DNA from: Octopus sinensis
Taxonomy: Eukaryota
Length of the DNA: 64,000 nt
Assembly: GCF_006345805.1 (NCBI RefSeq)
Contig: NC_043007.1
Location: 69,626,001-69,690,000 of the forward strand
Reading direction: 5' to 3'
A program made the translations under genes and the position numbers. A model generated the notes under the pieces. It made no database searches. It was not told the origin of the DNA and saw only the letters and a program-made list of their open reading frames with translations. This document shows positions 29,501 through 53,500 of the stretch, in pieces (positions within the stretch are counted from its first letter, which is position 1; each line of letters opens with the position of its first letter).

Positions 29501-32500
29501 GGTTAAAACCCTACTAACAATATTATTCACACTACTGACAGCATTCCTGTACATGGCTTGGATGGCTCTCACCAACCATAAATGCCAAGCACAGTGGTTT
29601 AGTTTTGGCTTAATACTTCTCCTGCAGTTGCTTTACTAGAAGGAGAGCATCAGAAGTGCTTATCTCTGATACAAAACCAAACTGCATTGTATCTAATTCT
29701 CTTCCTAATTAGTTGAGCTATGTCCCTTTCTGTAAGCCTCATGACTTGGTTCAGCAATTTGATACTTCTGTAGTTAGTTCTCTCTAAGGCATCTCCTTTA
29801 CTCTTGTAACAGATGACTACAATACCAATTGTTGGGTATGTTCCTGAACTATTTGATTAACTATATGGGTGACAAGGCTGTGTTTCATTCTTCAAGATAT
29901 TTTAAACACCTTACTTTCCAAGTAATCCATAAACTATACATTCTATAGTTATGTAAATTTCACAATTAAACTTTGCTGTGACACCAAGTTAAAAAAATGA
30001 ATCTCAGTGAAATCACATGCACAGGAGTTAAATGCTTTCAGATTTAATGCAAAGTAACCTGTGTATATATATATATATATATATATATATATATATATAT
30101 ATATATATATATATATATATAATATATATATATATATATATATATATAAAGTGAGAAAATACAGGTAATGAAGGCTTTTGTTTTAACTTACCAGCTTCGA
30201 AAAAGACAAACAGCATACAGCTCTTTCAAAGTCACCAATGCCAATAACCATTAAGGTTGTAAGACGCACCGATTCCCAGATACGAATATGAGGCTACAAT
30301 GTAATCAAAAGTCTAGGTTATAAAATTTTGAATTCATAGGACAAGAATAATCTTTCAGAGAAAAATGGTAAAAAATTAAAAACAATTCAAGTGTTTATTA
30401 TCACAGTTCAGTTACAAATAACTTAAGACAGTTGAAACTAAATTGGCAGGAGATAAACTTCAGTCTGATTTGCCTGAAACTCTACACAAGAAAAGAATAT
30501 CTGCAAGAGATTGCACTCAGTTTTCATAATATACAACATAATAAAGTAAAATTTAAATTACATATAGAACATCATCATAACAATAATATCTGGAAATATA
30601 TACTGCTGCAAATATTTATTTAAAAAAAAAAGACTTCATAAGGGTTTTGCTAAATAGTATAATGCAATGTCAAGTTATAGGATTCATATCCCCATTTTAT
30701 CAGGTGGTTAAAATTTAATGAAGTTTTTGCAGACAAAAAATTTATCTAAAATACTGTCGATCCAATTGAGTTCAAGATGAGATGGCATCTGTTATAATGC
30801 CCTTAATAGAATGGTACAGTTATGCATTGGATGTATGGTTTTATGTATCTGAAGAGGCCTCCTTCAAGGTGATATGATCTGCATTGGTAATTAGGGATAT
30901 CAGTTGTCATGCCTTGTGGTTGTAAAACTTTTACCTAAGCAATCACAATCATAACATCATCTGTGATGAGGAGCTGGCTAAATTTACAGGTAATTATAGA
31001 AAGATAATTAATTCTCTTCAGGTTATATAATGACTATTGGAAAGTGAGTACCTATATTTTAGTGATATATTTAACATCTATAGAGCAGAACTGAAGACTA
31101 CAGATTAAAAGACAAAAAGTTATCTTATTTTTATATCTTTTTATCATTAGTTTGTTATTTTTACTGTAAAATCGATATGTGTTTCAGAAAATTTCTGCCA
31201 AATTAATAATAGTTTTGATGCCAAAATCTTTGTTAAATATTGAAATACTGATATGCTAATAACTGTATTGCTAAGACTTTCATATACAAAACAGTTAAGT
31301 TGAAGGTAACCTAATTAAGTTTTTAAGTCTTGTACTGCAGATATCTGCAGCTGGCACCAAATCCCGACCAACATTAAATCACAGTAGACACAGTGTTGTT
31401 ATTTTTAAAGGTCAACAACTAGAACTAAGCACTTTTCCCAAGAGAGAAAGTTTAACCTCATTTTAGAATGAACTTTTTGTTTGTCCTATGTGTGATATTT
31501 TTCTGCGTTTTGTTAAGTAAATTTCTCTAGATTTTTCTTCCTTTGACTTTAATGGTGACTGATATCCTAGTGCATGGTAAGTTAGAATTCAGTGTCATTA
31601 TCTATTAATGATTTTTTTCAATTAAGAAATCAATTTCTTGTAAATATATGTGAAAATAATTGCAGCATGGAAGGTGTTTATAAGCCATTTAAGAAACACA
31701 CAAAATCCGTTAGATTCACTTCAACATTTCAATTTAATTTGTCAAAATATTTTCATCGTTTTGAAACTGCGACCTGTTCACTGACAAAATTCCATGCTGC
31801 ATCTCAGGTCACTTGCTATGCAAGTACATCTCCATAATATGTGAAAATGTTTATGCATATATCAACTTCATTGTATTCAACCTACTTATCACCAAAAAGT
31901 CAACAATAGGTAAAAACTACATTCACTATTGATACCAACAACCACTGTAACATATCAATAAATTTCATCCAGATTCAAGCAATAATTTATATTTTTAAGA
32001 TTCTTAAACTAGGATATCTTTAGGTTTTGAAGAGATTTCGACAGAGAAAGCACAACAGAACTTTAAGAGTTAATCATCATTTTTGATCCATTAAATAACA
32101 CTTGTACTGATTTTTAAAAAAACAAAAAAAAAAACCTTAGCTTAATGGTTACTTTTGGCATCAAAATGTAAGGAAAACAATTCTTAAATTTAAATTAAAT
32201 TCCAACCAAAGCCTAAAATAAACAATGTCTATGTTACAGATTAAATAAAAATGCATTTTTACCTAATATCAATTCAAACCTGATAGAACACTGCAAACAT
32301 GATTTTAAATTAAAAACATACGTAAGCATGAGTGTGTGCAGTATGCTATGTGTGTGTGTGTGTGTATATATATATATATATATATATATTATATATATAT
32401 ATATAATATATATATATATATATATATATATATATATATATATACACACACACACACACACTATTTTAAACCACAAATTACAATACACACACATAATATG

Positions 32501-50500: not shown

Positions 50501-53500
50501 AAAATCAAAAGTAGAAAGGGAATAAACTGACATTCCTTAAAGCTACTGGGGTGAATTACATTGGAATTTAATTAGCCAAGGGACCTGATAACCAGGTTCT
50601 CATCTGGAGTATTTATGGTAGGTTACACTCGATTCCTTGAATCCAGTTCTTATGTTGTACATGTATACATGTTTGCACACATGCCCATGTACACACACAC
50701 ACACACACACACACACACACACACACACACACACACACACAAGTGGCTTAGTGTAGAAAAAGGTTCAAGCCAGCCAAATCTAGGATGCTTTTTCAATCAT
50801 CTTGCATTTCTTTACTATGATCAGAAATAAATGAAGGTTCACAGAGTTGATTTAATTGAGAAAACAAATCCATTAACACACATCAATACATTACAGCTCA
50901 CAAAGCATTTTCATTATTTATCCCTCTAACTATACACATATGCACACAAACATTGCACATTCTTCCGTATAAATTTATCTGAACTGAAACTAAATAAAAT
51001 AAAATCAATCAGGACGGATAGCATATGTGTTAAATATTTGACATTTTCAATAGTAAATATTGTTTGCTTACCCGTCCTTCTCTCCTGTCATGACCAGCAA
51101 CTTGTCCAGTTGCAATTCTTATTTTATCAGGGTGGACTGTTAAGCTAGAAAAATAAATATATGTTGTAAATAAGAAATAGATAAGAAAAATAATAACAGG
51201 TTGAAAATGCACAAAAGTTTTTTATACAAATATTTATTTCAATGAAACAATTTGCATATAATAGTTTTACAGTAAAAGTATCTGTATATGTTCTCACAAG
51301 GTTAGCTTTACACACACAGCACAACAGAGAGAGAGAGAGAAATCACATATTATTGAAAAGTTCTCGTATATAAAAAAAAAAAAAAAGGTTTTACTGAATA
51401 AATTTCAGTGCATGTTGTACCCCAAATAGATTCTGAAGTAGAGGCTAAGTCAGTTTTTACACACACATTATATATATATATATAATACTTACACCAACCC
51501 TATACATACACACGTCCAGACCCCGCATACGCACTTATACTCTCTCACACACACACACACATACCTATACATACCAATACGTACTAATACATACTAATAC
51601 ATACACCAACCCCATACATACGCATGTCCAGACCAATCTTACGCACTAATACTCTCTCATACACACACACACACACCCTTATACATACTAATACATACAC
51701 CAACCCTATACATACACACATCCAGACCCCTCCCACGCACTTTTAGCTGGTCCCTCAACCCTTTTATCAACCCTATTATCTCCCCTTATTTCGCTCTCGC
51801 GTCTCATGTTTGATCTTTGACCTCTGGCCGAAATCAGATCGCCATGTTGATTCGTTAGCTACTGCACGCATTTTTTTTCTCTCCTTCTTTCTGTGTTTTT
51901 CTCTCTCTGTGTATCTTTCTGTTGAAGAGCGTAGGCTCGAAACGTTAAAGACTTGTTTTATTTATATTTCCTGAGCGCCATACTAATACAATTGTTCGTT
52001 TGTTTTCCACCTGCCTTCGTCTTTTGTTTATTTTCATAAAGCTTCCCGTTATATATATATATATATATGTATATATATATATATATATATTAAATTAGAG
52101 ATAAAACCACTATTAGGCAAATCAAACAGTGAAAACATAAGCCAATACATAAAATTAATTTAAAAATATAAAAGTTAAAAATAAAAAATTATTTAAATAT
52201 GTAAACTTATAAATTTTATATATATATATATCTATATATATACACACAAATATATATATATATATATATACACACAATATATATATATATATATATATAT
52301 AATATACACACAAATATAATATATATATATATATATATATATATATATATACACAAATATATATATATATTATATATATATATACACAAATATATATATA
52401 TATATATATATATATATATATACACACAAATATAATATATATATATATATATAATATACACACAAATATATATATATATATATATATATATATATATATA
52501 CACAAATATATATATAATATATATATATATATTATATATATATATATATATACACAAATATATATATATATATATATATATATATATATATATATATACA
52601 CAAATATATATATAATATTATATATATATATATATATACACAAATAATATATATAATATAATATATATATACAAATATATATATATATATAACAAATATA
52701 TATATAATATATATATATATATATATATATATATATATACACACAAATATATATATATATAATATATATAATACACCAATATATATATATATAATATATA
52801 TATATATATACACAATATATATATATATATATATATATATATAGAGGGCATTATACATACATGCCAGGAGGCATTGTATATACATGCCAAACGCTAAGAG
52901 GGACAATCAGTCATTTCTACCAAAAATATTACTAATCCCACCGAATGCAATTTTTCAAAGTAAGACATTTAAAAATATAGACCTGTATCACAGTGATTTC
53001 ATACTTACGTAATCATCATGATTACGTAAGTATGAAATCACTGTGATACAGGTCTATATTTTTAAATGTCTTACTTTGAAAAATTGCATTCGGTGGGATT
53101 AGTAATATTTTTGGTAGAAATGACTGATTGTCCCTCTTAGCGTTTGGCATGTATATACAATGCCTCCTGGCATGTATGTATAATGCCCTCTATATATAAA
53201 TTAATATGTTCAATAAGAAATAATTTTTTTCGAAATTTTTTCTCTTATGAGGTTTTTACGCTATCTACCTGACAATTTCTTGTTAAGTTTTCCTTATTAA
53301 GTAGTTGTCCTTAATTGCTAAATTTTTATATATATATATATATATATATATATATATATATATATGTATGTATATTTTTATGTTATTTATTTATTTATTT
53401 ATTTATTAATTAATTTATTTATTTTTCTAAATATCAAAAGTATTAAACTTTTAATACTTTTGATATAAAAAATAAATAAATAAATAATATATAAATATAA

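Follow-up and report, generated by a model that had tools for sequence, protein, structure and literature searches.

The stretch of Octopus sinensis DNA considered here, referred to as the window, comprises 64,000 nucleotides (nt) of contig NC_043007.1 (assembly GCF_006345805.1, positions 69,626,001 to 69,690,000), and all positions given below count from its first letter. On the minus strand lies an EML2-like gene, and the window covers its part from the HELP motif to the C-terminus. Over the exons in the window, identity to the proteins annotated as 'echinoderm microtubule-associated protein-like 2' in Octopus vulgaris and O. sinensis is 100%. When all of these exons were assembled into a query of 626 amino acids (aa) for the protein homology search, identity to EML2 was 99% in O. 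vulgaris and 93-96% in O. sinensis, the shortfall being due to inserted segments and to the approximate boundaries of the query. The present account concerns one long intron of this gene and the short segments in it that look like exons. Very probably, exactly two of them, here named c1 and c3, are real, independently used, frame-preserving cassette exons that feed a single propeller loop, and a third, c2, is a chance pseudo-exon.

The intron (30294-51071, minus strand) is 20,778 nt long, is in phase 0 and separates the codons of GHDRREGR from those of PHIRIW. Its donor at 51072/51071 reads GGA CGG/gtaagc and its acceptor at 30294/30293 reads ttgtag/CCT CAT (the slash marks the splice site). 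It is six times as long as the longest of the gene's other 14 introns in the window, which measure 114-3,425 nt, and this bears out the original prediction that an intron several times longer than the rest splits the protein at this point. The constitutive exon upstream of it (51144-51072, minus strand, 73 nt) encodes blade strands A and B and ends in GHDRREGR, and the constitutive exon downstream (30293-30192, minus strand, 102 nt) encodes strands C and D and begins with PHIRIW. Exon boundaries were obtained by exact spliced mapping of two Octopus proteins, P0124 and P0122, onto the window. Orthologues of the upstream exon were located in Argonauta hians (L001:81464-81535) and Sepia pharaonis (L002:52260-52331), and those of the downstream exon in the same two species (L001:90619-90720 and L002:79194-79295) and in the pearl oyster Pinctada imbricata (L007:15864-15965).

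Candidate exons were found by listing every in-frame, stop-free segment of the intron that is bounded by AG and GT. Three of them had been singled out beforehand from the sequence of the window, and all are on the minus strand. The first, c1 (48685-48635), has 51 nt and encodes 17 residues, with the acceptor tatctag/, the donor /gtgagt and a GC content of 0.39. The second, c2 (47254-47129), has 126 nt and 42 codons, ends in GDREM, and is flanked by the acceptor ctaatcttcag/ and the donor gtgtgt; its GC content is 0.48. The third, c3 (40435-40376), has 60 nt and encodes 20 residues, with the acceptor aattcag/ preceded by a weak pyrimidine tract, the donor /gtgagt and a GC content of 0.43. The intron background has a GC content of about 0.30. 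Each segment is unique in the window, and the three are without similarity to one another. Both c1 and c3 combine AG/GT boundaries with a length divisible by three and the absence of stop codons. These segments were exactly as originally described in length, uniqueness, open frame and base composition against an AT-rich background; the two textbook gtgagt donors proved to be those of c1 and c3, and the character of the three peptides (a phosphatase-docking pattern plus acidic residues in c1, acidic residues and glycine in c2, basic residues in c3) was also found as stated.

Such features have little diagnostic value in an intron of this size. The number of segments of 30-300 nt that are in frame, free of stop codons and bounded by AG and GT is 475, compared with 359 ± 42 in Markov-1 random introns, and because about 360 such segments are expected by chance, the pattern by itself is no evidence for an exon; the caution about chance pseudo-exons that accompanied the prediction was therefore justified. 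A strict splice-signal filter (GTRAGT donor, YAG acceptor, at least 10 pyrimidines in 15 positions) kept c1 together with a decoy at 32726-32652 and rejected the real c3, and was dropped as a discriminator for that reason. The decoy (32652-32726, minus strand) is an in-frame segment of 75 nt with the boundaries ctgtag/ and /gtaagt and a hydrophobic, low-complexity translation; it is unannotated and absent from the conserved islands described below. That its splice signals are better than those of c3 illustrates how the splice consensus alone misleads in AT-rich introns. Comparison across sequences alone separates the real c1 and c3 from c2, and sequence signals cannot decide the matter.

Cassette exons in isoforms and orthologous introns

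The loop between ATGQ and PH[IV]R[IV]W was compared across the retrieved proteins. All four combinations (no insert, c1, c3, and c1 with c3) occur among the annotated Octopus isoforms, and the inserted peptides are identical to the translations from the window. The loop has no insert (GR-PH) in O. vulgaris P0121 and P0122, in P0252 and in O. sinensis isoform X8; it reads GR-c1-PH in O. vulgaris P0123 and P0248 and in O. sinensis X7 (P0250), and GR-c3-PH in O. vulgaris P0125, P0126 and P0251 and in O. sinensis X4 (P0243). The double insertion, GR-c1-c3-PH, is found in O. vulgaris P0241 and in P0124, P0242, P0244-P0247, P0249 and P0253; among the named O. sinensis isoforms, X1-X3, X5 and X9-X12 have it, which is most of them. 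Both exons are present in two independent annotations, RefSeq Gnomon for O. sinensis and the genome annotation of O. vulgaris. The O. bimaculoides protein XP_052827945 (P0254) also carries c1 and c3, with one substitution (SQSL for SQTL). The exon array of the original prediction, if taken as a set of interchangeable variants, is not what these isoforms contain: a Dscam-like, mutually exclusive array was rejected because c1 and c3 are unrelated in sequence, and so are not homologous variants, and can be included together.

Outside Octopus, isoform X3 of Argonauta hians has a c1-type insert of 15 residues in the loop. Transcript-derived proteins of squid or cuttlefish type have either no insert or one of the inserts KKCVTFAESGSSPIAGDHQ and KKSVTFAESGPSPIAGDNQ. 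Among intronless Logan contigs assembled from RNA-seq data of the same type, two (L004 and L005) include the c1-type exon and one (L003) skips it, and an oyster RNA-seq contig (L006) includes the cassette as well.

Two of the protein models deserve separate comment. P0254 runs into the intron after GHTDDVK (continuing WYVVFLSFLVF), and the LTVHPDK...GR exon is missing from it, which points to a probable modelling error at that spot. The C-terminus of P0132, a Logan transcript-derived protein, diverges from the last exon junction onwards (VSLSAPKPIFVKKAITSPHSHI...), as would be expected if a transcript of squid or cuttlefish type had kept its last intron or used another 3' end.

The orthologous introns of A. 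hians (locus L001) and S. pharaonis (locus L002) measure 9.1 and 26.9 kilobases (kb), respectively. A tblastn search with the three peptides and a codon-level comparison, both suggested along with the original prediction, showed c1 and c3, but not c2, to be conserved in these species. Both flanking exons, c1 and c3 were found by tblastn in the two introns in the same order as in Octopus. The c1 orthologues (L001:82274-82318 and L002:61219-61275) and the c3 orthologues (L001:85979-86038 and L002:66379-66438, each with 19 of 20 residues identical) all have AG and gtgagt boundaries. When the whole Octopus intron was compared with that of Argonauta by blastn, only four islands emerged, namely the upstream exon, c1 (84 nt), c3 (262 nt, 85% identity) and the downstream exon. 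Comparison of the Octopus and Argonauta introns with that of Sepia gave the same picture, again without a counterpart of c2.

The two conserved exons differ in the way they vary. Of the nucleotide differences in c3 between Octopus and Argonauta, 3 fall in synonymous codons and 1 in a residue-changing codon; between Octopus and Sepia the corresponding numbers are 6 and 2. The c3 protein sequence is 95% identical, a conservation equal to that of the propeller core. The length of c1 is 45 nt in Argonauta, 51 nt in Octopus and 57 nt in Sepia, always a multiple of three; its core [RK]K-x-V-T-F-A-E-S is retained, and its second half is variable. The retention of the AG and gtgagt sites together with mostly synonymous change indicates that purifying selection acts on c1 and c3 as coding exons.

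The segment c2 occurs in none of the retrieved proteins and has no counterpart in the orthologous introns, and is therefore not regarded as an exon. It shares no 6-mer with any of them, even though it formed part of a 190-aa query (the flanking exons plus all three candidates); the matches to that query were all short fragments of EML proteins from other phyla, none of them from a cephalopod, and the query seemingly reaches only proteins of about its own length. Neither tblastn nor blastn found a homologue of c2 in the Argonauta or Sepia introns. It could be supposed that all three segments are real and that c2 is a young, Octopus-specific exon of an unsampled tissue or stage, which its good acceptor, its open frame of 42 codons, its GC content (the highest of the three) and its uniqueness in the window would suit. 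We consider this very unlikely, since c2 is absent from the Octopus isoforms of three species that were examined (P0121-P0126 and the 15 listed of the 20 members of the P0124 cluster) and from the 120 proteins listed for a query that itself contained c2; moreover, its donor gtgtgt is the start of a TG/TA microsatellite, and about 360 in-frame segments of its kind are expected in the intron by chance.

Several observations weigh against the reading of c1 and c3 as two independently used exons. Their inclusion in Octopus is taken from annotation models, in which the combinations of exons may be partly inferred. No transcript-derived protein found outside Octopus contains c3. Among the 16 proteins of decapodiform type (P0128-P0132 and P0255-P0265), 15 span the loop, and c1 is present in 4 of these 15 and c3 in none. 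Taken to its end, this line of thought would make c1 and c3 artefacts of annotation and the conserved islands non-coding regulatory elements, given that the Octopus exons are seen as models rather than reads and that protein or ab initio evidence is enough for Gnomon to place an exon. An origin of this kind is hardly credible: the changes in c3 are mostly synonymous, the AG and gtgagt boundaries are retained in three lineages, c1 remains a multiple of three despite its changes in length, both exons were placed by two independent annotation efforts, and intronless RNA-seq assemblies, both of squid or cuttlefish type and of oyster, contain the c1-type exon. Two real cassettes and one pseudo-exon thus remain the preferred reading. 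The prediction of several cassettes serving one loop, and of a surface loop varied by splicing, holds for c1 and c3, which are annotated, are constrained as coding sequence in coleoids and occur singly, together or not at all; it fails for c2, for which neither protein nor conservation was found.

Ancestry and conserved flanks of the cassettes

Inserts of 14-17 residues occupy the same point of the loop in oysters (RKAGKKDIPDADKDHW), Haliotis (KKRNSTSEVTDYDEKW) and Owenia (RKLRDQIDDFTEFPETW), and sister isoforms in these animals are without the insert. In P. imbricata (L007), exons of 72, 48 and 102 nt are arranged around the same phase-0 intron position, the 48-nt exon encoding RRAGKKDIPEEDKDHW between an ag acceptor and a gtaaga donor; the sizes of the flanking exons (72 and 102 nt) match those of Octopus. 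This short molluscan exon resembles c1 in its phase-0 position, its similar length, its basic start and acidic end, its presence or absence among isoforms and the occurrence of GCATG upstream. The sequence similarity of the c1-type exons of other molluscs to cephalopod c1 is weak, and they lack the K-x-V-T-F core, so that homology is inferred from position and character; on these grounds, c1 would be the cephalopod descendant of a short exon that is old in molluscs. Nothing resembling c3 was found in the Pinctada intron. Its presence in Octopus, Argonauta and Sepia suggests that c3 dates back at least to the ancestor shared by octopuses and cuttlefish (coleoids), which lived roughly 250-300 million years ago.

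Longer and unrelated inserts were also observed at the same loop: 35 aa in a chiton, 24 aa in a tubeworm, 34-35 aa (Ser-rich) in hemichordates and 22 aa in amphioxus (proteins P0138, P0187, P0193, P0194, P0199 and P0201). The loop seems to be a recurrent site of insertion across phyla.

Both cassettes have conserved intronic sequence beside them. At the acceptor of c1, a conserved island (48660-48736, minus strand), delimited by blastn and a three-species alignment, contains an aligned ATGCATG. Its GCATG lies at 48726-48722, 41 nt upstream of c1, and the corresponding positions are -41, -48 and -46 in Octopus, Argonauta and Sepia. The conserved GCATG suggests Rbfox-type control of the c1-type exon. 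In Pinctada, four GCATG were observed within 220 nt upstream of the 48-nt exon (L007:13386-13603), where fewer than one is expected by chance, and one of them is located directly in the acceptor region, ttgcatgattag, which abuts the exon. No GCATG is present within 300 nt of c3. The c3 island (40265-40526, minus strand; 262 nt, 85% identical between Octopus and Argonauta, with its core retained in Sepia) consists of the exon with about 90 nt of upstream and about 110 nt of downstream intron, and the downstream element TGCCTGCTT is invariant in Octopus, Argonauta and Sepia.

These conserved intronic elements probably control whether c1 and c3 are included. As a mechanism, it is proposed that inclusion of c1 would be governed by the (U)GCAUG about 45 nt upstream and that of c3 would depend on its roughly 200 nt of conserved flanks. 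The flanks of c3 could alternatively be conserved as double-stranded RNA, for instance as a substrate for A-to-I editing, rather than for splicing control. That the island extends into the intron by about 100 nt on either side of the exon agrees with such a role, and recoding sites of coleoids sit in conserved sequence. Nevertheless, the island folds no better than shuffled sequence in either Octopus (z +0.42) or Argonauta (z +1.57), a comparison of local folding in which long-range pairing partners were not searched for, and a double-stranded function is quite unlikely. Since the flanks of c3 are not unusually foldable, linear regulatory elements are favoured over local double-stranded structure.

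The remainder of the gene and other intronic features

Besides the two exons that border the long intron, fourteen further exons were mapped on the minus strand of the window by the same spliced mapping. The first two, at 56771-56645 and 54719-54570, jointly encode the HELP motif (PF03451, residues 291-330 of P0124, E 3.3e-22 in Pfam). Downstream of the exon beginning with PHIRIW follow exons at 28946-28845, 25974-25840, 24954-24855, 24096-23936, 23491-23366, 21829-21698, 20400-20244, 19771-19674, 19559-19472, 18284-18189 and 17740-17607, and the last exon at 14526-14404, which is followed by the stop codon. All mapped exons have a GT donor and an AG acceptor. In O. bimaculoides, the EML gene spans about 374 kb, and a protein-kinase gene is nested in it on the opposite strand.

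In the EML family, a coiled-coil trimerisation domain characterizes the N-terminus. The N-terminal part of the octopus protein is encoded outside the window and includes two predicted helices (residues 50-71 and 73-99 of P0124). Octopus isoforms such as P0122 and P0124 differ in this part by a segment of 18 residues, GIYIARPSSLLRSLDDIT, and one of 73 residues, RAKPVYYGKLPS...KKWFQP, and no exon for either segment was found within the window. Short Octopus EML isoforms of 667-687 aa also exist.

Repeats and possible remnants of mobile elements were noticed in other introns of the gene. A near-perfect palindrome at 52827-53207 has arms of 190 nt each (52827-53016 and 53018-53207), which are 98% complementary and separated by a 1-nt spacer. 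It lies in the EML intron next to the long one and adjoins a simple repeat of TA/TATG type of about 750 nt (about 52150-52900, 13% GC), and could be a foldback element or an artefact of long-read assembly. Three intronic open reading frames resemble decayed transposase genes (26834-27238, minus strand; 22475-22876, plus strand; 16373-17124, minus strand). A Pfam scan of the three gave no family at E <= 0.001; one of them carries a segment that we take, as an impression, to resemble a mariner motif.

The variable loop and its relation to known systems

Both propellers of the EML protein, which make up the TAPE domain, are recognized by Pfam in P0124 (PF23409, E 5e-123; PF23414, E 7e-117), and the human EML1 structure 4CI8 matches the octopus protein with E 1.4e-61. 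The isoform with both inserts, P0124, was modelled with AlphaFold2 from 68 aligned homologues. The predicted local distance difference test (pLDDT) score exceeds 90 over both propellers and falls below 50 at residues 373-396 and 399-408. The insert lies between the strands at 360-366 (IRIATGQ) and 415-419 (IRIWE), and a weak helix is predicted at 395-403 within c3. In the model, the inserts are located in the B-C hairpin of the second blade (counted in sequence order after HELP) of the first beta-propeller, which agrees with the earlier placement of the insertion point at the turn between the last two strands of a WD40 repeat.

Singly or together, c1 adds 17 and c3 20 residues to this loop. 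It is proposed that the inserts are flexible and surface-exposed, and that they would act as splice-switchable short linear motifs and leave the fold unchanged. Short linear motifs usually show themselves in this way, by a brief invariant core within an exposed and flexible insert. The docking pattern of RVxF type for protein phosphatase 1 (PP1) is [RK]-x(0,1)-[VI]-{P}-[FW] in an accessible, disordered region. Such a pattern is present in c1, as K-N-V-T-F in Octopus and Argonauta and as K-C-V-T-F and K-S-V-T-F in decapodiform-type sequences, within a loop whose pLDDT is below 50; by pattern match, the c1 core is thus a candidate RVxF-type PP1 docking motif. The c3 peptide combines a strongly basic character (K, R, K, R) and a hydrophobic stripe, and part of it may form a short helix, which is weakly predicted.

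From these elements, a more specific proposal can be composed, in which coleoid splicing installs two docking peptides on one loop, an old cassette with an acquired RVxF-type PP1 site and a coleoid-specific basic helix. We regard it as speculative and, on present evidence, unlikely. An RVxF-type pattern is expected by chance in about 2% of peptides of such length by our estimate, and the c1-type exons of other molluscs are without the motif. The IQ motif for calmodulin binding has the consensus [FILV]Q-x3-[RK]-G-x3-[RK], and was rejected for c3, which has M four places after Q and then P in place of [RK] and G. By WD40 convention, B-C loops are on the 'top' face of the propeller. The conserved concave surface of TAPE binds tubulin (bioRxiv 10.1101/466979, citing the EML1 structure paper).

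The exons c1 and c3 are already present in public gene models of RefSeq and ENA. The annotated EML2 isoforms of O. sinensis (XP_036363550-XP_036363562), O. vulgaris (CAI9730037-CAI9730044) and O. bimaculoides (XP_052827945) contain the same peptides at the same junction, in all four combinations, but carry no information on how deeply the exons are conserved, on their counterpart in oyster or on the motifs in them. No literature discussing these octopus EML exons was found, and the comparative picture, in which c3 is deeply conserved, c1 has a molluscan ancestry and the loop repeatedly hosts alternative inserts across phyla, appears to be undescribed. Because the exons were already annotated, the result is a lead for work on the cephalopod cytoskeleton and splicing rather than a discovery. 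In kind, it is ordinary alternative splicing. It may be added that the two real exons had been singled out among about 475 in-frame candidates from sequence alone, and that the pair flagged by gtgagt donors is the real pair.

Alternative splicing of EML genes is known from other animals. Two reports on C. elegans describe exon 5 of elp-1, the single EML gene of the worm, as an in-frame alternative exon of 81 nt that encodes 27 Ser/Thr-rich residues, is highly conserved among nematodes and is regulated by cell type, being skipped in touch neurons under MEC-8 (ELP-1a/ELP-1b; PMC2642796, PMC8934639). The original prediction had named an alternative exon of elp-1 in this region as a parallel. Exon 5 is truly alternative, but its placement in this loop is probably wrong: the order of items in the legend of Fig. 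2C suggests that it lies before the HELP motif. In vertebrates, splicing into long and short variants of EML2 and EML4 diversifies EMLs in neurons, and the events described there affect the trimerisation and basic regions at the N-terminus and leave the propeller unaltered (PMC12182296). At the loop in question, vertebrate EML1 and EML2 have a fixed addition of two or three residues, which fits the earlier statement that vertebrate EMLs carry only a few extra residues there (QLP, PLP or PLQ). Neural microexons resemble c1 and c3 in that they are short, preserve the reading frame, are conserved over long evolutionary distances together with their intronic flanks and fall in surface loops of interaction domains. 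With 51 nt, c1 is at the upper limit of this class (at most 27 nt in the strict and 51 nt in the loose definition), and c3, with 60 nt, is above it.

In contrast to the known N-terminal splice variation of EMLs, it is the folded, tubulin-binding propeller itself that is varied here. If the proposal of two docking peptides on one loop were true, an EML protein would switch its partners by cell type, for example by recruiting PP1 to microtubules or by altering the binding of the propeller to tubulin.

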